Below are positions 49,871 to 63,904 of a stretch of DNA of 64,000 nucleotides, piece by piece (positions within the stretch are counted from its first letter, which is position 1; every line of letters starts with the position of its first letter). The position numbers were made by a program, and so were the translations under genes. The stretch is from positions 1-64,000 of IMG/VR virus record IMGVR_UViG_3300021137_000001; one strand, written 5' to 3'. The notes below the pieces were generated by a model. That model had not been told where the DNA came from, did not search any database, and saw only the letters and a list, made by a program, of their open reading frames with translations.

Positions 49871-50664
49871 TGGCAACAAAAATTTTAGTAGTCGGATGTT
49901 CGTTTTCAAATGGTCATGGGCTCAATGATCAGGACAATGGCGATTGTAATAAATCTGATCCAAAACTTTGGGTTAATCAGGTATGCAATAAAGTTTGGCC
50001 TAATTCAGACATAACTAATCTTGCGAAAACTGGAGCAAATAATAATTGGATATTCTTTGAAACTATAAGCGCATTATTATTAAATGAATATGATATTGTT
50101 TTAGTAGAATGGACGGCGATACCTAGATTCAATATTAAAGTAGGATTAGAATTGTACACCGTTGAATCAATGTTAAATTCAGAATCAATTGATATTAATA
50201 TTAATAACAATATAACTTATACCAGTAAATGGCTAAACTCATTAGGTGATAATTTACGAAAAATACATAACGATCATTGGGATATTTTAGATCTTGTCAA
50301 ATATATAAATGTCATATTGCAAATACACAAAGGAAAAACATTTTTTATCAATGGGTTGGCTCCGTGGCCAGATCAATATTTTACTAAGAAAAAAATTCAG
50401 TATCCATCTGAATTATCAAATTTTGAACAAAATATGTTTGCTATAAGTACCAGAGATGACGATGAAATATTTGCTCTTTATGAAATGGTACATAATCAAT
50501 ATCAACAATATGGAGGAGTACGTCAAGAGCATTGGTTAAATTTATATAGCTCATTGATGTCGATGCAAGTTGATTATATAAGCGATACAGATCTGCACCC
50601 AGGTTACAAAAGTCAAGATATATTTGCAGAATATTTAATATCACAACTAAGAGAAAATAATTAA
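49870..50664 (+). CDS. SGNH/GDSL hydrolase-like accessory protein
   Basis: LVVGCSFSNG at the N-terminus, DLHPG at the C-terminus; AT-rich. Confidence 0.55.
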   Translation: MATKILVVGCSFSNGHGLNDQDNGDCNKSDPKLWVNQVCNKVWPNSDITNLAKTGANNNWIFFETISALLLNEYDIVLVEWTAIPRFNIKVGLELYTVESMLNSESIDININNNITYTSKWLNSLGDNLRKIHNDHWDILDLVKYINVILQIHKGKTFFINGLAPWPDQYFTKKKIQYPSELSNFEQNMFAISTRDDDEIFALYEMVHNQYQQYGGVRQEHWLNLYSSLMSMQVDYISDTDLHPGYKSQDIFAEYLISQLRENN

Positions 50665-51680
50665 TGGCACTAGCTAGACTGATAATCAAAGATGAAGTTA
50701 ATGTAAAGATCGAAGGACTAGACTTACATGAACGCAAAGAACTCAGCAACATGTTCAAGTATGAAATTCCGGGCGCACGTTATCTACCAAGTGTACGTCT
50801 TGGTCGTTGGGATGGCAAGATTGCTTACTTTCAGTTAGGTGGTAGCACGTACACTAACTTGCTTGCTGAGATATTACCATACTTAGATGAGCGTGGGTAT
50901 AACATTGAGTTGGAAGATTTACGTGACTATAGAACACAGTTTAGTTTTGCGCAGGTAACAGAACAAACATTCGCACACAAAGTATGGCCAGCTAAACATC
51001 CGATTGCGGGCCAGCCAGTTGTGCTACGAGATTATCAAATTGAAATCATTAACAAGTTTCTTGAGAACCCACAGTGCATACAAGAAATTGCAACTGGCGC
51101 AGGTAAGACATTAATTACTGCGGCACTAAGTTATAGCTGTGAACAATACGGTCGTACTGTAGTAATCGTACCAAACAAATCACTTGTTACACAAACAGAA
51201 GCAGACTACATTAACTTGGGACTAGACGTTGGTGTTTACTTTGGTGACAGAAAAGAATATGGACGTACACATACAATATGTACATGGCAAAGTCTTAACA
51301 TTATGCTTAAGAACACTAAGTCAGCAGAAGCCGATGTTACTATAATGGAATTTTTAGAAGGTGTTGTATGCGTTATGGTCGACGAATGTTTTGATAGTGA
51401 TAGTAAGGTATTAACTCCGACTGGATATGTGGCTATTAAAAATATAAAAGCTGGTGACAAAGTAATTAACTATTCGGAAAATACTAAAGAATTTAAGATA
51501 GATACTGTAGTTAAACAACATATAAATTTAACTAATTCGTCTAGCGAAAAAATGTATGAGCTAACCTTTGATAATGGAGTATCTATCCGTGTAACTGGCA
51601 ATCATAAATTTTTAACTAATTTGGGTTGGTGCAGGGCCGACGAATTATCAGATAACCATGAAATTGTAAATAAAACATAA
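50664..51680 (+). CDS. uvsW: UvsW SF2 helicase N-terminal half fused to a 97-aa N-intein
   Basis: LRDYQ, ATGAGKT, VIVPNKSLVTQ, TWQS, VMVDE|CFDSDS...TGNH...NKT*. Confidence 0.9.
   Translation: MALARLIIKDEVNVKIEGLDLHERKELSNMFKYEIPGARYLPSVRLGRWDGKIAYFQLGGSTYTNLLAEILPYLDERGYNIELEDLRDYRTQFSFAQVTEQTFAHKVWPAKHPIAGQPVVLRDYQIEIINKFLENPQCIQEIATGAGKTLITAALSYSCEQYGRTVVIVPNKSLVTQTEADYINLGLDVGVYFGDRKEYGRTHTICTWQSLNIMLKNTKSAEADVTIMEFLEGVVCVMVDECFDSDSKVLTPTGYVAIKNIKAGDKVINYSENTKEFKIDTVVKQHINLTNSSSEKMYELTFDNGVSIRVTGNHKFLTNLGWCRADELSDNHEIVNKT
51387..51677 (+). mobile_element. Split intein N-fragment (97 aa)
   Basis: Block A CFDSDSKVLT, block B VTGNHKF. Confidence 0.88.
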
Positions 51681-51707
51681 ATACATATAACTAATGCAGA
51701 AGTCCTT

Positions 51708-52610
51708 ATGAAAATACAATACAATAAATGGATAGAATTACTCAATGACAGACTAATAGAACATAATCAATCTATTAGAGTAATCGAGTACTCTAGTGGC
51801 ACATTAACATTGTCGAGCGGTGAAACTTTACTAGATAATAAGTTTGAGAAATTTAAAAAACGAGTTATGAATAAAAAAACCACAATGTGGGTAGATAATA
51901 TGGATAACTTATTCCATGGTACAGTTACTGAAAAAGAAATTAAATCTAAATTGGCGGCAATTGGCGGGTTGTCAGTACAAGAAAAATACGGTGAAAATAT
52001 TAGATTAAATCTTAATACAGGTACCCCATGGAATAAAGGTACCAAAGGACAAAATATAGGTACAGGTACTCCCCGACCACAAGCAGTTAAAGACAAAATT
52101 AGTGAAAAAAATTCCGGCAACAGAAATGGTATGTACGGAATTAAGATGACTGAACAAGATAGACAAAAAAAATCATCATTAATGAAACAAAAAATATTAG
52201 CAGGAGAGTTTACTCCTAACAGCAATAATAGAAATACTCATTGGGACACGAAATTTAATAGTAAATCGTATAGGTCAAGTTGGGAGGCATTATATCAATA
52301 TATTAACCCTTTTGCAGAATACGAGACACTGAGGATAGAATATAATTTGCATGATAAAAGACATATTTATATTGTGGATTTTGTAGATCATGTCAATAAA
52401 CTAGTGGTAGAAGTTAAACCTAAAGAATTGTGCATTGGAGAGAAATTTGGTGCGAAAATGTCGGCACTAACTGCATGGGCCAACAATAATAACTATAAAA
52501 CACTATTAGTTAATAAAAAGTGGTTACAAGAACAAGTAGTTGATATTGATTACAGTATGTTTGATACAAAAACTGCAAAAAAAATAAAGGCGTTATATGA
52601 AACTAATTAA
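51708..52610 (+). CDS. Free-standing homing endonuclease (NUMOD3-like plus TnsA-like PD-(D/E)xK) between the uvsW halves
   Basis: PWNKG, NGMYG; YRSSWE...YIVDF...VEVKP. Confidence 0.75.
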   Translation: MKIQYNKWIELLNDRLIEHNQSIRVIEYSSGTLTLSSGETLLDNKFEKFKKRVMNKKTTMWVDNMDNLFHGTVTEKEIKSKLAAIGGLSVQEKYGENIRLNLNTGTPWNKGTKGQNIGTGTPRPQAVKDKISEKNSGNRNGMYGIKMTEQDRQKKSSLMKQKILAGEFTPNSNNRNTHWDTKFNSKSYRSSWEALYQYINPFAEYETLRIEYNLHDKRHIYIVDFVDHVNKLVVEVKPKELCIGEKFGAKMSALTAWANNNNYKTLLVNKKWLQEQVVDIDYSMFDTKTAKKIKALYETN

Positions 52611-52701
52611 CCGAACAGAAATATCTAAACCGGCCAATGTATATAATTTACATATAGAAAATGACCACAACTATATTGTCGACGGAGCAGTGGTGTCAAA
52701 T
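52597..52701 (+). mobile_element. Split intein C-fragment (35 aa) ending Ser-Asn, followed by Cys+1
   Basis: AAT at 52699-52701, TGT at 52702. Confidence 0.88.
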
Positions 52702-53436
52702 TGTCATATGGCCAAAGCGGATGCGCTGAAAACTTTATTAACGGGAGTGATGTCACACATACCTATCCGATGGGGCTTAACGGGCACAATACCTAAAGAA
52801 ATGTACGAGTTTATGAGCCTAAAGTGTTCATTGGGTGAAGTCATTGGGCGTTTAAGTGCAAGTGAATTACAAGATCAGGGTGTACTTGCTAACTGTCATG
52901 TAAACGTTGTACAGCTAATAGACCATGTTGAATATAAGGATTATCAAAGCGAGTTAAAATATCTATTAGAGACAGACGCACGTATTGATTATATAAGTAA
53001 AATGATAGAGCGTATTAGATTAACTGGCAATACACTTGTCTTAGTTGATCGCATCGCACCGGGCAAAGCATTAGTTGAGCTAGTTAAAGATGCTGTGTTT
53101 GTATCAGGAGGAACAAAAGCAAATGATAGGAAAGAAAGTTATGATGAGTTTGCAACCAGTGATAACTTTGTTGCTGTTGCCACTTATGGGGTTGCTGCTG
53201 TTGGTATCAATATCCCTCGCGTTTTTAACCTTGTGCTCATTGAGCCTGGTAAGAGCTTTGTGCGGGTCATCCAAAGTATCGGGCGTGGCATTCGTAAAGC
53301 GGAAGACAAAGATTTCGTCCAAATCTGGGACGTAACGTCAACTTGTAAGTTTGCTAAACGACATCTTACAGTCAGAAAGAAATTTTATTCTGAGGCCTCA
53401 TATCCTTACGCAATAGAAAAAACCGAATGGAAATAA
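52597..53436 (+). CDS. uvsW: C-intein (35 aa) fused to the UvsW C-terminal half
   Basis: VYNLHIENDHNYIVDGAVVSN|CHMAK; GLTGT, GINIP, QSIGRGIR. Confidence 0.9.
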   Translation: MKLINRTEISKPANVYNLHIENDHNYIVDGAVVSNCHMAKADALKTLLTGVMSHIPIRWGLTGTIPKEMYEFMSLKCSLGEVIGRLSASELQDQGVLANCHVNVVQLIDHVEYKDYQSELKYLLETDARIDYISKMIERIRLTGNTLVLVDRIAPGKALVELVKDAVFVSGGTKANDRKESYDEFATSDNFVAVATYGVAAVGINIPRVFNLVLIEPGKSFVRVIQSIGRGIRKAEDKDFVQIWDVTSTCKFAKRHLTVRKKFYSEASYPYAIEKTEWK

Positions 53437-55383: not shown

Positions 55384-56371
55384 ATTACATATTAGACAAC
55401 ATTTAGATCGCCTGACTACTAAGAAAATATTAGTAGTCGATGAGTCTGATCTACTTGCCGATGAGATAATTTCCACTGATTCATATGATAGTATAATATT
55501 TGATTATGCAACCCCATATATTCAACAGTTAAATGAACTTAAAATAGTTGAGTTGTTAATACAACTAAATTTATCTATACCGTGGATAATAATAACATCA
55601 AATTTTACTTATTATAAAAATAATAATCCACATATAATATATTATCCAATTTATTTTATTGATGGCATTGATAAAGCTGGGCAACGAATAGAGATATGGG
55701 GACCTCGCTTATATAATTTAAGTTTTATGTCGTATCATTTGCACTGGCATCGATTATTGTCGTTGTTAGCATTATATAAACAAACATGGTTTACTACTTG
55801 CCTACTAAATTTATTGCCTATTGCCCAAATGAATTCAAGTCAATTACAAGGATATCAAAATGGTATACTATTGTTAACTAAGGATGAATTGTTATCATTA
55901 AATGAATTGTTTAAATTAGCTCCAATTGTTGCAGACGACACCGATGATCAACGAGAGATTGTGAATATACAAAATCGAGCATTCACTGATTGCTATATAA
56001 ACATGTTTACTGAATCTGATTACGCAAAACCATTTATAACAGAAAAAAGCATAAAACCTTTTTTATCAGGGCAATTCACTGCGGTGATGGCACATAAAGG
56101 AGTATATACCCATTTACAAGATTTAGGATTTGATTTATTTCAAGAATACATTAATTTAGAATTTAATATAATAGACATAAATGATGCAAGAAATGCAATT
56201 AATAATGTGATTGATCAAATTTCTAAATTATTACCTAATATAGAACAAGTATGGAATGATACCTATATTAGACGTAAGCATAATTATGAACTTGCAATAT
56301 CGCCTGCATTGCGCAGTGAATTGTGTAGAGAATTAACAGAACAATTAAATAAAGATAAAGAGACTATATAA
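55376..56371 (+). CDS. AT-rich glycosyltransferase-like accessory protein
   Basis: FTES...FITEKSIKPF...G...LQDLGFDLF resembles GT-B (GT10-like) C-terminal motifs. Confidence 0.45.
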   Translation: MNKLHIRQHLDRLTTKKILVVDESDLLADEIISTDSYDSIIFDYATPYIQQLNELKIVELLIQLNLSIPWIIITSNFTYYKNNNPHIIYYPIYFIDGIDKAGQRIEIWGPRLYNLSFMSYHLHWHRLLSLLALYKQTWFTTCLLNLLPIAQMNSSQLQGYQNGILLLTKDELLSLNELFKLAPIVADDTDDQREIVNIQNRAFTDCYINMFTESDYAKPFITEKSIKPFLSGQFTAVMAHKGVYTHLQDLGFDLFQEYINLEFNIIDINDARNAINNVIDQISKLLPNIEQVWNDTYIRRKHNYELAISPALRSELCRELTEQLNKDKETI

Positions 56372-56610
56372 TGGCATATAACCCAGCCCAATTTAAAGCA
56401 AAGAAGAAACGTGCAGTAGATCCAAATGCGCCACCGCGCCCTAACTTGCTAGCACATGAAAAGAAAATGAAAGAGTCGCAAGCGGCATTTGAAGAACTGT
56501 ATCATAGAGTGCATCAACAAGCAGAGTTGATTGAAAGTTTGCGCACAAAGTTTCAATTTTTAGAACACACAGTGAATTACATTGTGGCTAAACTTAAAGG
56601 TAACAAATGA
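56371..56610 (+). CDS. Small coiled-coil protein
   Basis: Coupled ORF. Confidence 0.55.
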   Translation: MAYNPAQFKAKKKRAVDPNAPPRPNLLAHEKKMKESQAAFEELYHRVHQQAELIESLRTKFQFLEHTVNYIVAKLKGNK

Positions 56611-57071
56611 GTTCAAGTTTACAAATTAGTGATGAGATGGCAGCATATGATCGCAAAGATCGTGCTTACTACGATAACTTTACAGACGAAGATGTGAAGA
56701 AGTTTAGCACATACTTAATGCTACGTTATGGCGCAAGCGTTACTGGGTCAAGTGATTTACAAGCATACTATGTTATGGCAGTAAACGAACGTGTAAACAA
56801 AAACTTCTTTGACTTAGGCAAACACCCGAAGTTACAATGGTTACTTTGTACAACAGTAAGCCCGGGAATGGGCAGACAAAGTCATTACTGGCAGGGTACT
56901 AAGAAGAAAGAAGGCGATAGCAAAGCAGTAAAGTTTCTTGCTAAACTATATCCTAATTTAAAACAAGATGAGCTCGATGTACTTGTTGCAATCAATGATA
57001 CTAAAAGTCTTAAACTGCTAGGGCAAACAATGGGTATGGATGATAAGGCAATTAAGAAAGAGCTTGGATGA
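56607..57071 (+). CDS. Putative clamp-loader small subunit (gp62-like)
   Basis: YLMLRY, VNERVN and LQWLL motifs; replication context. Confidence 0.4.
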   Translation: MSSSLQISDEMAAYDRKDRAYYDNFTDEDVKKFSTYLMLRYGASVTGSSDLQAYYVMAVNERVNKNFFDLGKHPKLQWLLCTTVSPGMGRQSHYWQGTKKKEGDSKAVKFLAKLYPNLKQDELDVLVAINDTKSLKLLGQTMGMDDKAIKKELG

Positions 57072-57805
57072 TTAACGACATTGTTAGCGCATGGAAGGAT
57101 AGCAACATAGCAAAGCCCGCGGGATATACGTGTAAGTATTGCGAGCGTAGTTTTCAACGTGAGAAAACACTTGCTGCGCATCAGTGCGAACCAAAGCGCA
57201 GATGGCAACAGGAAAAAGAAGTCGGTGTACAGTTTGGCTTACAGGCATACTTACGCTTCTTTGAACTGAGTCAAGGTAGCGCAAAGACAAAGAGCTACGA
57301 AGATTTTGTTACAAGCCCTTACTACACAGCATTTGTTAAGTGTGGCAGATACATGATTGATGTACGTGCAGTGAACCCAAAAGCGTTTATTGAATATGTA
57401 CTTAAACAAAACAAGAAGATTGATCATTGGACACACGAAGTAGTATACTTAGAATACTTACATCAGTATATGCGCAAAGAAGCAGTGTCGGATGCGCTTG
57501 AAAGAGCATTAACGGAGATGCAAAAATATGTGGACGAAAATACAGAATTATTTCCGAATGGGTTCAGAGACTATTTTAGAGTGGCTAATCCAAACCGTGT
57601 TTGCCATCATATTGCTAATGGGCGTGTCAGTCCTTGGATTGTGTTTAACTGTGATTCGGGCATTGCATTTCTTGGTGAGTTGGGCGAAGAGCAAGTTACA
57701 CAAATAATTAAAATGATTGACCCGGAGTACTGGCAACGTAAGTTTAAAGATTACTTGGCTGATACTGAATGGACTAAACAGATTTTAAAAGATGCCGGGC
57801 TATGA
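57068..57805 (+). CDS. C2H2 Zn-finger-containing protein
   Basis: YTCKYCERSF...LAAHQC. Confidence 0.6.
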   Translation: MINDIVSAWKDSNIAKPAGYTCKYCERSFQREKTLAAHQCEPKRRWQQEKEVGVQFGLQAYLRFFELSQGSAKTKSYEDFVTSPYYTAFVKCGRYMIDVRAVNPKAFIEYVLKQNKKIDHWTHEVVYLEYLHQYMRKEAVSDALERALTEMQKYVDENTELFPNGFRDYFRVANPNRVCHHIANGRVSPWIVFNCDSGIAFLGELGEEQVTQIIKMIDPEYWQRKFKDYLADTEWTKQILKDAGL

Positions 57806-58389
57806 CAATTAAGTTTAAATCCGACATTGATATCGATTTTGCTGACCGAACAGAGATATTGAATTTAATAGATCATGTACCTGCGAGCATACTAACTAAT
57901 GGTAATTTTCGAAAACATGCGTCTGGAATCTATGTAACGGACATCCCACAAGACCCATTTACAGCACAAGCAAGTATTGATTATGATGTTGCTGAAGATA
58001 GAGGTTATGTTAAACTGGACTTTCTTAACGTAAACTTATACAAGCAAGTACGTGACGAAGCACATTTAATTGAACTTATGCGTGAACCGGACTGGGCTCG
58101 ACTATATGACCCAGACTTCTGTGCGCAATTGATGCATGTAAATGCACATTATGATACATTGATTAAAATGCCCGAAGCAGTAAACACTATTCCGCGACTA
58201 GCAATGTTCCTTGCTATCATACGTCCTGCAAAGCGACACTTGGTTGGTAAAACTTGGAAAGAAGTTGCTGAAACTGTGTGGGATAAACCCGATGATGATA
58301 CTTATTACTTTAAGAAGGCGCATTCGATTTCGTACAGCCAATTAGTTGTTGTTAATATGAATTTAATAGAAGAACAATTAATGTTGTAA
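57802..58389 (+). CDS. Miniature DNA polymerase III alpha (DnaE)-like catalytic protein
   Basis: DIDIDF, KHASG, KLDFL, AIIRP and FKKAHSISY occur in DnaE order within 195 aa. Confidence 0.7.
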   Translation: MTIKFKSDIDIDFADRTEILNLIDHVPASILTNGNFRKHASGIYVTDIPQDPFTAQASIDYDVAEDRGYVKLDFLNVNLYKQVRDEAHLIELMREPDWARLYDPDFCAQLMHVNAHYDTLIKMPEAVNTIPRLAMFLAIIRPAKRHLVGKTWKEVAETVWDKPDDDTYYFKKAHSISYSQLVVVNMNLIEEQLML

Positions 58390-59067
58390 TCGTTTTAATT
58401 CGGCAACTTTTCTGGCAGCATCTCCTAATTTTCTTTTATGCTCTTCTGTTCTAACAGGTTTTGGTTTTCTTAATTTAGCCTTTCGTTCTTCGGATAATGG
58501 TATTCCCTTCAACTTCGATACTTTGCCTGTTTGTGAGATTGATTTCTTCCGTTTGGTTTCTTCTGAATCGGGTATTCTGTGTTTGTGTGCTTCGCTCATT
58601 TTTAATTTAGTTTCGAGTGAATGTTTCTTTCGTGCGATACCTTTTTGTGCATTGGAAATTTTTTGTCGTGTTTCTGCAGAACACACACGCTTTGTTAATT
58701 GTTGGGTTACCAAATTTGATCTTTCTATTCTTAAATTTTCATACACCCTGCTAGTGATGTTAGTGGTATATCTAGGTTGAGTAACAGACATTCGCTTCAT
58801 TGAAAACAACGCAAAAATCATCGATGTTCGACCTGGGCCAGTGGTAATTTTACTTAATAACCAATGACAAATAAAATGTTCTCTTGCTGTTAATTTAACT
58901 AAATTACCTAATTCGTTGCTTCCTAATAAAGAACGAGGAATAATATGATGAGTTTCGTAATATACATACTCGGGATTACTTTTTTTTAATTTTTTTCGAT
59001 TCTGTGATTTTGCGGTATTGATTATATTATAATACCAGATAGTGTATTTGTTATTAATAAATAACAT
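58378..59067 (-). CDS. HNH homing endonuclease with NUMOD3-like repeats (paralogue of 8528..9241)
   Basis: ETHHIIPRS...NLVKLTAREHFICH; KHSLETKLKMS. Confidence 0.8.
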   Translation of the reverse strand: MLFINNKYTIWYYNIINTAKSQNRKKLKKSNPEYVYYETHHIIPRSLLGSNELGNLVKLTAREHFICHWLLSKITTGPGRTSMIFALFSMKRMSVTQPRYTTNITSRVYENLRIERSNLVTQQLTKRVCSAETRQKISNAQKGIARKKHSLETKLKMSEAHKHRIPDSEETKRKKSISQTGKVSKLKGIPLSEERKAKLRKPKPVRTEEHKRKLGDAARKVAELKRLQH

Positions 59068-59137
59068 AGCTGTAACTCCTAAATAGTTATAGAGTAGTTG
59101 GATATGTCTAGTATCGTGAACTACATTAATATTTATC
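59068..59137 (-). promoter_or_regulatory. Late promoter plus a structured two-hairpin 5' leader of the HNH gene
   Basis: TAAATA; GTAGTT/AACTAC with inner GATA/TATC; CTATAACT/AGTTACAG covering AGGAG. Confidence 0.55.
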
Positions 59138-59511
59138 TATTGAACACGTCTTACCAACGTGATGGAACGGCGCTTACTGCGCTTTGCTGCAATTTCTCTT
59201 AGACTTACGTACGGCCCGTGTTGTATTACGACATCTTTACTGTTGAATGTTTTTAAACAAACTCTAAACTCTACCCAATCCTGCTTTAAAAATACGTTAA
59301 TAGGTATAAGTCTATTACTCTCCCACCACCACTGATCTGCCATAGCTAAAAACACTGTTTTCTGCTCCAATGTTCGTAGTGCAGCGAAGTCATATATAGT
59401 GGTGATGAATTCATCTGCGTTCTGAACCACGCCAATATATTCATTACCACCATACGTTAAGAACGACATGAAAGGGTATTGATCTAATAAAATCTTGTGA
59501 CTGTCTTCCAT
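59137..59511 (-). CDS. Hypothetical protein (MEDSHK...)
   Basis: ORF with YPF, YIG and WWWESNRLIPI motifs. Confidence 0.6.
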   Translation of the reverse strand: MEDSHKILLDQYPFMSFLTYGGNEYIGVVQNADEFITTIYDFAALRTLEQKTVFLAMADQWWWESNRLIPINVFLKQDWVEFRVCLKTFNSKDVVIQHGPYVSLREIAAKRSKRRSITLVRRVQ

Positions 59512-59549
59512 TGGATTCCGTATAAATATGTGATAAGGGATAAAACATA

Positions 59550-60044
59550 GTGCCACTCATTACTTCATATTTATACGAGAATATTATCGAGGTTCAGATT
59601 CTGGACACAAATCCCACAATTAAAACAAGGAATAATGTCGTGTATAGCAGACCAATCAAAATTTACCAAGGAATAGATAATCCTGTTCAAGTTCATATTA
59701 AGAATCAAGATCAAAAATCAGTAAATTTGACGGGCTATGCAGTACAAATAGACATACAAGATCCATTAGTACAAGGGTCGATGGAAAGTTTAGCTGTAGA
59801 CATGACAGACATAACAACAGGACAAGGTACGGTAATTATTACACGTGATGTTGTAAACTCGTTAGATCAACGATACTATAAACTAACTATTAAATTAATT
59901 AAACAAAGTAATAATGCAGAACGCCCGTTGTATATTGACAGCAACTTTGGCGCACTGTTAGATTTAGAAGTATTACCGGGTTGGTATGAAAGCATGCCAC
60001 TCACATTAAACTCAGATGAAGTAATTGACGGTGGAACAATATAA
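59550..60044 (+). CDS. Hypothetical virion protein (possibly baseplate/fibre adaptor)
   Basis: TATAAATA at 59521; GTG start; coupled to the fibre gene. Confidence 0.5.
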   Translation: MPLITSYLYENIIEVQILDTNPTIKTRNNVVYSRPIKIYQGIDNPVQVHIKNQDQKSVNLTGYAVQIDIQDPLVQGSMESLAVDMTDITTGQGTVIITRDVVNSLDQRYYKLTIKLIKQSNNAERPLYIDSNFGALLDLEVLPGWYESMPLTLNSDEVIDGGTI

Positions 60045-63000
60045 TGACAATATCATATAGCAAACAAGTATTATTAAAAAGAGGCAATACTGCGGTATCG
60101 AGTACATATCTTGGACCGCTGGGTGAGTTAGTATTAGATACTGATACATTAAATGTATATGTACACGATGGCGTAACTGTAGGTGGTACATTAATAGGTA
60201 CGGGCACAGGCGGTACTGGTGGCAGCATTTATGGTGACGCTAATGTTGCGGCTTATTTGACAAGTATCGGATATAACCCATACGGTGATTCAAATGTTGC
60301 TACGTATCTAGGTGCGTTTGATGGTAACATCGTTCCATCGGCAAATAATGTTTATAGTTTAGGTAGTATTGATAGTCAATGGAAGGATTTGTTTGTTAGT
60401 AATAACACCATTTACATCAATGGTGTGCCATTAACGTTGGGCGCAGATAATACTTCATTGAGTATTAACGGACAACCCATATTAAGCAACGGTAGTATTA
60501 GTAGTTTTAGTACAACAGGTAATATCGCAGCCAGCAACTTCTTTATAACTGATGGTGTTCCCTTAACAGGCAACATAGCATTTGCTGGTGATCAAATTAT
60601 TAATTCAGCTGGAAATGATATCCGTATTGTTGCCAATAACAATACGTGGGCATTTGGCACAGATGGAGTAATTACGTTCCCAGACAACACAGTACAAACT
60701 ACAGCATATCCGGGAGATGGTGCAATCGACACACATAGCTGGGTTAACAAATTATCATATCCTGTTAATTCATCTATTAATCCAATAGCAGTAACATCTA
60801 CAGAATATGACAGTCAAGGTAATATTATTGCGCTAGTACTTAATTATTCAAATGGACCAGATTTTGTCACTGTTATGAAGTTTGATCAATACGGGTCATT
60901 AATCGGGCAAGTTAACTATGCTGATACTTTTAATATTGATGGCTGGGGACTGGCAGTTGATCTAAATGACGATAGTATATACATTACCGGTTCCACTGCC
61001 GGCGTACTTGATACTGAGATATTTATTACTAAATTAACTAGCGAACTGGTGGCAGTATGGACAAATACTTACGGCACACCACAAGACGATAATGGGTATG
61101 TTATTGACGTAGCATCGGATGGCAACCCAGTTATAGTTGGTATATCATCAGTTACTGCTATTACTATATTAAAAGTTGCTAGTGCAGATGGAGCAGTTAT
61201 CTGGCAACAAGAATTAATTGCGGCTACAGGCAGTTCTCAAGCATACGGAATGGGAGTAGGCCCAAGTGGCGAGATTGTTGCGGTTGGCAATAGATATGAC
61301 GTTGGTGATTCTACTAATCGTCAATTAGTTGTAAAATATGATAGTACTGGCGCAATACAGTGGCAAAAAGAATTATTAATGGATGCTGGCTTTGAGTGTC
61401 GTGGTGCTGATGCAGATATAGATAGTAGCGGAAATATTTACGTACTTGGTACTTACGATTGGGCCAGTGGTACCGGTCTTAGCGTAACGCAACTTAACAG
61501 TTCAGGAGTGGCACAATGGACACGTAAAGTACAAGGACCGTGTAATGAGCTTGCATCTAGTATAGTATGCGGCCAAGATGGTTTCTTATACTTAGAAGCG
61601 ACATCAGGAACTGCTATTACTGGCCCTGATATAAGACTTGATAAATTAATAGCCAAATATGATACAAGTGGTGCAGTTATATGGCAACGTAAATTTTCAT
61701 CGGCAGTTAATTGGCAAGTAGATTTTAATTTCTTCACTAATGGTATTGCTGGCGGCAGCTTGTTAGCAGTTAGAAATGGTTTATTTGCCGTGGGTGGATT
61801 ACAAACTCCTCCTTATTTCGGCGGTGGCCCATCACAGTGGAACGGTCTAGTATTTCAAACTGCTACAAGTGGGGTTGAAGTCACTATGGGAGAATATACA
61901 TTTGCAGCAAGTAACTTATCTGGTATATTAACTACACCGTTTAATACTGCTGATGCTGGATTAGTAACTCAGACAGGTAACTTATCTCAATTTAACACAT
62001 ACGCAATCACATTATCGTCGGGCAGTGTTACTTCGACACATACCGGTACTGAGAATCTTGGTAATTTTATATTCTTTAAAGATACTGTTAGAGTTGATAA
62101 TGGAATGACAGTAATTACCAACCGTGGAACATTAAATATCGGTACTAATATGGAAATGCCCGGCGTTCCACAACATTTTCATATTGCCTTTGATGGTAGT
62201 AATGGCACAGCCCCAACCAGTGACTTATTCTTAGGAGATGATTGGAATTATACAAAAATACCAGCAGGACGTAATGGAGTTATTATTGGTGCTGGTAACT
62301 TAGGTGGCAACGCACAACAATGGAACTTTGGTATCGATGGCAATTTAACATTGCCTAACTCTGCTACCATTTCTGACCTTAAGGGTGGAGCAACAGCATT
62401 TAGTTCTATAGGCGGCGTACAAATTAACACAGCAGCAGGTACTTGGCAATTTGGTGGTGATGGCAGTTTAACATTACCGGGTGGTGGTACAATCACTTCT
62501 GCTCTTGGCTCGCCACAACAAGGACTTTGGTTAGGATGGAATGGACATAAATTATTACTGAACGATGACGGTCAATTTTGGACGGGCGGGGTTCAGCTAG
62601 GCGGTAGTGGACACCCAGGTTATGTTGGGTCATATGGCAACATAACGCTAGATACCAATATTGGTGCTACTCCCGGCGATTCAAAATGGGTCTTTGGAAC
62701 AGATGGTTTGCTAACATTCCCAGATGGACAACTAATTGGATCTCTAGAAGGCTCTGCTGGTATCTTTGGTCCAAACGGAACAGATTTTTTAATCAATACT
62801 CGCTTTGATAACACAGGTTCTTATCAGGCGTGGACATTTGGCACCAATGGTATATTAACATTACCATTTGGTAGCACTATCAATGATACACCGTTAGCCC
62901 CAGGTGCAGGCGGTAATGGCCAGGCTGTTGAGATCAAACCAGGCCGCGTCAGCCATAATAATCAACTATTAAGAATATATCCCACAGCTCCTAATCCAGA

Positions 63001-63904
63001 CGGCAATCACCTACACTTAACTTCAGGCGATCTCACAGACACTGATTTGTTCCTAGGCGATGACAATCAGTTTGTACAAATTGCTGTTGACGGTAAAGTT
63101 TGTATTGGTACTTATGGTACTGAAGGACATTTCTGGCAGTTTGGCACAGATGGTACAACTTCATTTCCTAACAATGCTATTACCACATCTAATACACCAT
63201 TAACAATACAAACTAAATTACCTGCTACATATGGTCCGTTTTACACAGCGTATTTTGAAAGTGGCAATGGCAGTGTAAACGGTGTTCATCCGGGAACTTA
63301 TGCTGGATATTTTAGTATTACTACTGTCAATATTAACAACGATGGAACATATTCAGTTAGTGGTTACCCAGCATCTATACAGAACGGAACTAATCCAACT
63401 TATACAATATCGGGTGTAGACTTAGGCGGTACTTCCCCTGCCAACGACTGCCTATTAACTGTTACCACAGTCGATGACATTATTACAAATGTAGTAGTAT
63501 CCGGTACTGCGCTTTTACCTAAATGGACCTTTGGCACAGATGGTTCGTTGACATTACCTGGTGCAATTATTACAACTGCAAACACTTCATCATATACCAG
63601 TACAACGGTTACTGTTGATATTACTGCATTAGTTAATAAATTAGTACCACAAGCAACAACAGGTGCCCCACATTATTATATTCCTCCAGGAACTGATGGA
63701 CAAATTATGTATCTTGTTCCGGCAAATATACATAATGACGGCAGTGAATCAACAACGATAAGTTTTGATAATGCTCGTTGGTCAAGTGGCGCAGGTCCAA
63801 TTTATATTAGTGAAGGCGCAAGGCCAAGTTGGCTTCCATTTGCAGCCGGTTCTGCTGTTGTAACAATCATATTCGCTAATGGTGCATGGAATCTTCCATA
63901 CTAG
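60044..63904 (+). CDS. Tail fibre/receptor-binding protein with Mtd_N-like N-terminus, propeller-like repeats and WxFGxDG modules
   Basis: LLKRG...GELVLDTD...VHDG; KYDSTG.IQWQ repeats; seven WxFG(T/I/G)(D/N)G motifs. Confidence 0.7.
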   Translation: MTISYSKQVLLKRGNTAVSSTYLGPLGELVLDTDTLNVYVHDGVTVGGTLIGTGTGGTGGSIYGDANVAAYLTSIGYNPYGDSNVATYLGAFDGNIVPSANNVYSLGSIDSQWKDLFVSNNTIYINGVPLTLGADNTSLSINGQPILSNGSISSFSTTGNIAASNFFITDGVPLTGNIAFAGDQIINSAGNDIRIVANNNTWAFGTDGVITFPDNTVQTTAYPGDGAIDTHSWVNKLSYPVNSSINPIAVTSTEYDSQGNIIALVLNYSNGPDFVTVMKFDQYGSLIGQVNYADTFNIDGWGLAVDLNDDSIYITGSTAGVLDTEIFITKLTSELVAVWTNTYGTPQDDNGYVIDVASDGNPVIVGISSVTAITILKVASADGAVIWQQELIAATGSSQAYGMGVGPSGEIVAVGNRYDVGDSTNRQLVVKYDSTGAIQWQKELLMDAGFECRGADADIDSSGNIYVLGTYDWASGTGLSVTQLNSSGVAQWTRKVQGPCNELASSIVCGQDGFLYLEATSGTAITGPDIRLDKLIAKYDTSGAVIWQRKFSSAVNWQVDFNFFTNGIAGGSLLAVRNGLFAVGGLQTPPYFGGGPSQWNGLVFQTATSGVEVTMGEYTFAASNLSGILTTPFNTADAGLVTQTGNLSQFNTYAITLSSGSVTSTHTGTENLGNFIFFKDTVRVDNGMTVITNRGTLNIGTNMEMPGVPQHFHIAFDGSNGTAPTSDLFLGDDWNYTKIPAGRNGVIIGAGNLGGNAQQWNFGIDGNLTLPNSATISDLKGGATAFSSIGGVQINTAAGTWQFGGDGSLTLPGGGTITSALGSPQQGLWLGWNGHKLLLNDDGQFWTGGVQLGGSGHPGYVGSYGNITLDTNIGATPGDSKWVFGTDGLLTFPDGQLIGSLEGSAGIFGPNGTDFLINTRFDNTGSYQAWTFGTNGILTLPFGSTINDTPLAPGAGGNGQAVEIKPGRVSHNNQLLRIYPTAPNPDGNHLHLTSGDLTDTDLFLGDDNQFVQIAVDGKVCIGTYGTEGHFWQFGTDGTTSFPNNAITTSNTPLTIQTKLPATYGPFYTAYFESGNGSVNGVHPGTYAGYFSITTVNINNDGTYSVSGYPASIQNGTNPTYTISGVDLGGTSPANDCLLTVTTVDDIITNVVVSGTALLPKWTFGTDGSLTLPGAIITTANTSSYTSTTVTVDITALVNKLVPQATTGAPHYYIPPGTDGQIMYLVPANIHNDGSESTTISFDNARWSSGAGPIYISEGARPSWLPFAAGSAVVTIIFANGAWNLPY

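Follow-up and report, generated by a model that had tools for sequence, protein, structure and literature searches.

A predicted two-gene minimal DnaE-type nucleotidyltransferase in an uncultivated 329-kb freshwater phage

Introduction

A split minimal form of the Pol III alpha subunit has been described in the group 2.2 jumbo phages on the basis of sequence analysis (Iyer, Anantharaman, Krishnan, Burroughs, Aravind 2021, Viruses 13:63; PMC7824862); the role suggested for it is the synthesis of one strand, or repair, and this minimal Pol III has been proposed as a model for the ancestral bacterial replicase. A second viral point of reference is Pol X of African swine fever virus (ASFV), a minimal X-family polymerase of ~20 kDa that comprises only palm and fingers, functions in repair and has demonstrated activity (PMC11646218). 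The stretch of DNA analyzed here (the window) is the first 64 kb of IMG/VR record IMGVR_UViG_3300021137_000001, a virus record of 329,321 bp, complete and flanked by direct terminal repeats, from an uncultivated freshwater phage that is found repeatedly in freshwater and lake metagenomes. One open reading frame (ORF) of this window, at 57802..58389 on the plus strand, encodes a protein of 195 amino acids (aa) that most probably constitutes the C-terminal subunit (C-piece) of a two-gene, non-covalent minimal C-family (DnaE-type) nucleotidyltransferase typical of the Rak2/PA5oct/Atu_ph07-like ("group 2.2") jumbo phages, with the N-terminal subunit (N-piece) encoded elsewhere in the same genome.

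The two pieces are connected by homology to consecutive segments of the DnaE palm and fingers, a shared split point, co-occurrence, purifying selection, natural fusions and a confidently predicted interface. As judged from the alignments, they retain between them every catalytic and nucleotide-facing motif of DnaE. The window gene is another member of a family already published as a prediction, and the doubt about novelty expressed in an initial annotation of the window was well founded, given the 2021 description; some GenBank records also already label the pieces "DnaE-like DNA polymerase III alpha".

The C-terminal piece

The C-piece is read from a complete ATG-to-stop ORF, and the DnaE motifs occur in the order given by the initial annotation: DIDIDF at residues 8-13, KHASG at 38-42, KLDFL at 71-75, IRP at 140-142 and FKKAHSISY at 170-178. 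The corresponding parts are a palm strand (D8/D10/D12), the HAxG motif (39-42), K71/D73 and a reduced helical fingers base (R141-P142 with F170-K171..H174..Y178). In 80 homologues, with identities down to 29%, D8, D10, D12, K71, D73, R141 and P142 are invariant, and H39, G42, K171, H174 and Y178 are at least 90% conserved. When the profile of these 80 sequences was compared with the PDB, all nine of the nine matches were DnaE alpha chains (E 7.4e-5 to 1e-3). Against E. coli alpha the profile aligns in three collinear segments, which pair D8/D10 with D401/D403, K71/D73 with K553/D555, R141-P142 with R639-P640 and F170..Y178 with F756..Y764; the claim that all three catalytic aspartates are retained in a C-family palm/fingers module is upheld by this alignment (D8/D10 and D73). 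The DnaE-like motifs are more than a chance resemblance, because they are conserved across divergent homologues and because the profile matches DnaE alpha chains only. No Pfam model detects the C-piece, and a PDB search with its single sequence returned nothing useful.

Modeled alone, the C-piece adopts a confident fold, with a predicted local distance difference test (pLDDT) value of 96.4. In the structural comparison proposed in the initial annotation, C-family polymerases alone scored well; the Foldseek statistics are modest (E 5e-3, template modeling (TM) scores of 0.31-0.39), with Cid1 and HalB far down the list. The protein is considerably reduced: the stretch from D12 to H39 has 26 residues, modeled as only a short helix and a hairpin, compared with 105 from D405 to H511 in E. 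coli, and the C terminus lies 17 residues past Y178, the counterpart of Y764 in the 1,160-residue E. coli protein.

The median ratio of nonsynonymous to synonymous substitution rates (dN/dS) is 0.13 over 119 unsaturated pairs. This value indicates that the C-piece is under purifying selection and not decaying, and the decay that had been raised as a possibility finds no support. The C-piece is at most 48% identical to any isolate phage protein. Its family is large (5,978 clusters when grouped at 90% identity, 403 when grouped at 50%) and includes thousands of intact homologues of uniform length; among its carriers are phages of E. coli, Klebsiella, Pseudomonas and Agrobacterium that can be cultured.

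Two individual homologues deserve mention. In Agrobacterium phage Atu_ph07 (MF403008.1; L088:2486-3061), the deposited coding sequence AUZ94883.1 starts 81 nt too far downstream and the DIDIDF strand is lost; the full ORF begins MKNIPDIDIDF. The Alishewanella phage vB_AspM_Slickus01 (OQ508957.1), whose genome of 141,644 bp is well below jumbo size, encodes a homologue with 33% identity.

The N-terminal piece

The DnaE Pfam model, searched against the phage's own genome, gave a second short match at 177,476-177,694. This match lies in the N-piece, a 170-aa protein encoded at 177,182-177,694, outside the window and about 119-120 kb from the C-piece, which scores above the PF07733 gathering score over model positions 24-94 and is a full-length member of phrog_11127. 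A partner encoded separately, as the initial annotation had anticipated, is thus present. A profile of N-piece homologues matches residues 320-393 of E. coli alpha and 385-455 of Taq alpha, and the match stops exactly at FERFLN, eight residues before E. coli D401. The GxGRGS motif, equivalent to E. coli 361-364, is invariant in N-pieces, and the C-piece has no equivalent of the segment that bears it. In DnaE structures, the GRGS loop binds the triphosphate of the incoming deoxynucleoside triphosphate. The median dN/dS of the N-piece is 0.07 (15 pairs).

The termini of the two pieces are strikingly uniform. Every aligned N-piece ends in ...EF(L/F)(K/R/N/E), with one or two extra residues in two of them, and every aligned C-piece begins a few residues (up to 16) ahead of DxDxD, so that all aligned members of the clade share one break point. 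In the present phage the C-terminal sequence of the N-piece is ...VWGVGRGSSVASYVLYLL...YYDLDIKEFLK. Trans-splicing of the DnaE halves was considered and rejected, as there are no intein blocks in either piece: neither half has a Hint/intein Pfam match, and the termini read ...KEFLK (stop) and MTIKFKSDIDIDF. Given the absence of such blocks and the position of the break inside the palm, the halves would have to associate without splicing.

Predicted association of the two pieces

By tblastn, 96 GenBank phage records contain the C-piece and 92 the N-piece; the counts per genus are nearly the same for both, and the two genes are 34-224 kb apart. Among the matches listed, all but one are in jumbo genomes (RaK2/121Q/PBECO4/CBB-like, PA5oct-like, Atu_ph07, Phosso and a Vibrio phage), the single non-jumbo match being the 142-kb Alishewanella phage. 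Both halves are present in two of two near-complete IMG/VR records tested; fragmentary contigs often carry only one.

An exhaustive search with no length filter identified natural fusions of the two pieces. In the 375-aa protein P0152, residues 13-181 correspond to the N-piece (hhalign probability 99.8%, E 2.5e-29) and are followed by an 8-residue linker and the C-piece. Two further fusions, P0271 and P0272, come from independent contigs; all three proteins are 375-376 aa long, lie on short contigs and have PF07733 on record, and the fused form is genuine, if rare. At the fused-gene locus L145:1066-2193, the 3' neighbor weakly resembles p139, a neighbor of the C-piece gene described below.

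A complex of the N- and C-pieces was predicted with a score of 0.91, compared with 0.18 for the best control, with a partner pLDDT of 91 and at least 90% of contacts in common among three runs. Among solved complexes 58 of 80 attained the score mark, as did 2 of 110 mismatched pairs, counts that serve only as a rough calibration because alignments of our own, built from window, viral-contig and database proteins, were used. The predicted interface places N-piece residues 131-144 (GVGRGS) against C-piece residues 2-14 (DIDIDF). The elements expected in the sheet of a Pol-beta-like nucleotidyltransferase (a G[SG] nucleotide-binding loop, a DxD strand and a third acidic residue) are all present but distributed over two chains, with GRGS in the N-piece and D8/D10 and D73 in the C-piece; the prediction places them side by side in the complex.

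These observations also bear on the initial description of the C-piece as a minimal C-family nucleotidyltransferase. The assignment to family C stands, and self-sufficiency does not, the GxGRGS-bearing half of the palm residing in the separate 170-aa gene. It is very improbable that the 195-aa protein suffices for catalysis, either as a minimal polymerase or as a primase, even though the three metal-binding aspartates are all in it and its fold is predicted with confidence in the absence of a partner: the triphosphate-binding GS/GRGS half is encoded by a separate, co-occurring gene, natural fusions join that half to the C-piece, and the DxDxD strand is buried against the partner in the predicted interface. 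A primase role in particular, which the initial annotation had entertained, has no support, since the genome includes a primase of the gp61 type (at 65.4 kb) as well as a full PolB.

Missing DnaE domains and other replication genes

The absence of PHP, clamp-binding and OB domains noted for the 195-aa protein extends to the whole genome, as does that of a thumb. No match to PHP (PF02811), DNA_pol3_finger (PF17657) or HHH_6 (PF14579) was detected in the complete genome, whereas control genomes did match (14 of 14 for PF02811), and tblastn of E. coli DnaE against the phage genome found nothing. The suggestion that the remaining parts of DnaE might be encoded elsewhere as a split enzyme therefore proves correct for the palm, through the N-piece, and incorrect for the other domains.

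In addition to the primase, the phage encodes a PolB frame of 900 aa near 220 kb, a gp44 clamp loader (G000:C1:179419-180345, ~179.4 kb) that comes just after GroES and the N-piece and, at 50.7-53.4 kb, a helicase of the UvsW type. In relatives, the C-piece is 1-3 kb upstream of the primase gene, and three of the six examined have the N-piece ~1 kb ahead of gp44. Gene order in the phage and its relatives therefore places both halves in replication-gene neighborhoods. The gene for p154, a gp62-like candidate, stands beside the C-piece, and that for the gp44 ATPase subunit beside the N-piece, 120 kb apart; a clamp-loader pair and a polymerase pair are spread over the same two loci, with the gp62-like partner as a candidate.

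This context is relevant to the question of whether the split enzyme is a templated DNA polymerase at all. It could instead be a nucleotidyltransferase of another kind, such as a terminal transferase, a tailing enzyme or the maker of a nucleotide signal or modified nucleotide in phage-host conflict. The DNA-gripping domains of DnaE (thumb, HhH/clamp-binding, OB) are all missing, the Pol-beta-like fold serves many non-polymerase transferases (Cid1 and HalB do appear, far down the Foldseek list), and a glutamate of the N-piece, E167, stands in place of a DnaE arginine. However, the fingers motifs RP and FKKxHxxxY, whose DnaE equivalents point toward the incoming nucleotide and the template, show little or no variation. 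Good structural scores are confined to C-family polymerases, and both genes lie in replication clusters, one with helicase and primase and the other with GroES and the gp44 clamp loader. A non-polymerase function is consequently regarded as unlikely.

Neighboring genes of the C-piece

The initial annotation placed the C-piece in an overlapping run with a clamp-loader-like and a zinc-finger gene. The run exists, as four genes (56371..56610, 56607..57071, 57068..57805 and 57802..58389) with a 4-nt overlap at each junction and the C-piece gene last; the two assignments hold to a lesser degree, with a zinc finger below the Pfam cut-off and a clamp-loader-like protein (p154) that is weakly gp62-like, with some support. 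An independent DNA run gives the identical locus, including the junctions of an adjacent homing endonuclease gene (HEG). In an RNA-library run, contigs of a ~92% identical relative span p154, Zn245, the C-piece and p139, a hint of transcription of these genes in the relative, DNA carry-over into the library being possible. A megablast search of the locus against GenBank phages gave no match.

The gene directly upstream of the C-piece (57068..57805, plus strand) encodes Zn245, a 245-aa member of phrog_11058 with an N-terminal C2H2 zinc finger, weakly matched (zf-C2H2, E 0.003), and an all-helical domain. In all 80 related viral loci, Zn245 precedes the C-piece in the same orientation. GenBank phage records with Zn245 number 93; in those inspected it comes immediately before the C-piece or is separated from it by 1-3 small ORFs, and this order is seen in PA5oct, Phosso, Atu_ph07, RaK2, Vibrio 2.275.O, Turkey5 and PBECO4. 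In the Atlas it has phage relatives only, and its AlphaFold2 model is poor (pLDDT 59.7) and unfit for fold search. Zn245 is a candidate partner of the C-piece. Since its gene is coupled in translation to that of the C-piece here and stays next to it across the clade, the minimal Pol III might have more than two parts, with Zn245 as an obligate third subunit that replaces the missing thumb/DNA-binding domains, maybe together with p154 and p139, in a small multi-subunit polymerase that extends gp61 primers or fills gaps beside PolB, comparable to the help that DnaE gives PolC in Firmicutes. This extended arrangement is viewed as rather unlikely.

The second gene of the run (56607..57071, plus strand) encodes p154, a small helical protein of phrog_11758 with no Pfam match of its own. 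Its Atlas feature score is 0.93 to a cluster in which 13% of members carry PF16790 (Phage_clamp_A), the model of its nearest Atlas cluster aligns to that PF16790-bearing cluster at TM 0.73, and tblastn gives E 3e-6 to a gene of phage Turkey5 annotated "sliding-clamp-loader small subunit". p154 is plausibly related to small clamp-loader subunits of the T4 gp62 type. The first gene (56371..56610, plus strand) encodes the coiled-coil-like p79, conserved upstream in 66 of the 80 related loci and without a family match in Pfam or PHROG. On the other side, the convergent neighbor p139 (59137..59556, minus strand; phrog_11637, E 1.6e-30) is found downstream on the minus strand in 78 of the 80 loci, and a small minus-strand gene occupies the same position in PA5oct, Phosso, Atu_ph07, RaK2, Vibrio 2.275.O and Turkey5. 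Further along the window (60044-63904, plus strand) is a gene for a 1,286-aa Gly/Thr/Ser-rich protein without a PHROG match, which by its composition is probably a fiber or other virion surface protein.

Homing endonucleases and the split helicase

An HNH homing endonuclease with NUMOD3 (58378..59067, minus strand; PF07460 NUMOD3 5.7e-11, phrog_655) is encoded directly 3' of the C-piece, between it and p139, and a second HNH-NUMOD3 HEG (G000:C1:177731-178429, plus strand) lies directly 3' of the N-piece. The two are 42% identical and belong to the same family, of which there are seven full copies in the genome. The HEG at the C-piece site recurs only in the identical contig L006 and is missing there in the 79 other loci; neither of the two insertions occurs in any relative, identical contigs excepted. 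A rough post-hoc estimate, for seven copies and an assumed ~450 intergenic sites, puts the chance of adjacency to both halves at ~1 in 1,000. The adjacency may reflect homing into conserved genes. HEG insertion as the cause of the split was rejected, as the HEGs are private to this phage. In some relatives (loci L022, L045, L049-L055, L073, L074, L077 and L078), p139 is ~1.2-1.6 kb past the C-piece start rather than the usual ~0.55 kb, which implies other insertions of ~0.7-1 kb in the same intergenic site; this site looks like an insertion hot spot.

The UvsW-type helicase of the window (50664-53436, plus strand) is a split-intein "fractured gene". Its 338-aa N-half contains UvsW_N and DEAD domains, with the N-intein beginning right after "...VMVDE"; its 279-aa C-half carries an IntC fragment ending "...VVSN" ahead of "CHMAK..."; and a 300-aa endonuclease gene (phrog_15427) lies between the halves. 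Trans-splicing would, to judge from these junctions, restore the DECH motif II of the helicase. Fractured genes of a similar arrangement have reportedly been found in metagenomes. A scan of 50.0-60.5 kb with Rfam gave no intron or other RNA family.

With HEGs directly beside both halves and another gene of the window broken by a mobile element, the DnaE pieces could be imagined as decaying, non-functional remnants of a complete host-derived dnaE that mobile elements have broken. This idea is barely credible: the split is common to the whole clade whereas the HEGs are private to this phage, dN/dS is low for both the C-piece and the N-piece, the catalytic residues are invariant in 80 sequences as little as 29% identical, and homologues of uniform length remain intact in their thousands.

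Proposed mechanism

In the preferred reading, a two-gene minimal DnaE-type enzyme, the N-piece would supply the first part of a Pol-beta-like palm, including the GxGRGS triphosphate loop, and the C-piece would supply the DxDxD strand with two metal-binding aspartates, a further aspartate together with a lysine (K71/D73) and a cut-down fingers base (RP, FKKxHxxxY), which in DnaE lies against the nascent base pair. A sheet shared by the heterodimer (~365 aa in total) would rebuild the Pol-beta-like active site, and we infer that the heterodimer catalyzes templated DNA synthesis. Lacking a thumb, PHP, clamp-binding domain and OB fold, the enzyme is expected to be distributive and non-proofreading, which favors a role accessory to the T4-like PolB replisome, possibly in filling gaps, repairing DNA or extending primers. 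The adjacent zinc-finger protein possibly assists the pair.

Several points weigh against this reading. The statistics for the C-piece, in both sequence and Foldseek comparisons, are modest (E 7e-5 and 5e-3; TM 0.31-0.39), and a shallower profile of 16 sequences gave no match in the PDB. In the N-piece, no DnaE counterpart was detected for the first ~95 residues, and the invariant E167 aligns with E. coli R390, so that nucleotide binding may differ from that of DnaE. Part of the complex score may stem from solved single-chain DnaE structures that the prediction model had learned, and its calibration counts are only roughly valid for our own alignments. It is also hard to explain how the primer-template is held without a thumb or other DNA-gripping domain, and a literature search turned up no experiments on members of the split minimal Pol III family.

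Comparison with known systems

The bacterial DnaE and PolC structures (PDB 2HNH, 2HPI, 3E0D, 5LEW, 3F2B) present GRGS, DxDxD, HAxG, KxD, RP and F(N/K)KxHxxxY in the same order and fold as the phage pair. Unlike these enzymes, the pair has no PHP, thumb, HhH/clamp-binding domain, OB fold or tau-binding tail, and compared with E. coli DnaE its fingers have ~120 rather than ~350 residues and its N-piece has an invariant Glu at the R390 position. If active, the pair would be the smallest C-family polymerase core by a wide margin, at ~365 aa in two chains (E. coli DnaE has ~1,160 aa), and a natural experiment in what a DnaE active site needs to work; as the family, which is abundant, occurs in culturable phages, it is directly testable.

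The cyanobacterial split DnaE, which uses a split intein, is likewise a C-family polymerase made from two distant genes. The phage pair differs in having no Hint/intein block and in the position of its break, which falls within the palm, 8 residues ahead of the catalytic aspartates; a genuine split intein does break the UvsW-type helicase of the same window. For function, ASFV Pol X offers what may be the best analogy, as another stripped-down viral polymerase with a Pol-beta fold beside a replicative B-family polymerase. It differs in belonging to family X rather than C and in being a single chain with demonstrated activity, while that of the phage pair is predicted.

The closest system remains that of Iyer et al. 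(PMC7824862), and the minimal Pol III described here, although a remarkable and testable enzyme, repeats a published prediction. A text search of that paper found no fused forms, constant zinc-finger neighbor, homing endonucleases, selection measurements or controlled structure/complex test. In both systems, distant genes encode a C-terminal unit for Mg2+ and template binding and an N-terminal unit for NTP binding, the genome has no other Pol III domain and a family B polymerase is present alongside; the nearest isolates of the present pair (Atu_ph07, RaK2-like and PA5oct-like phages) are members of the group that they described. Unlike those members, the pair described here belongs to an uncultivated freshwater phage and has a homing endonuclease gene beside each half.
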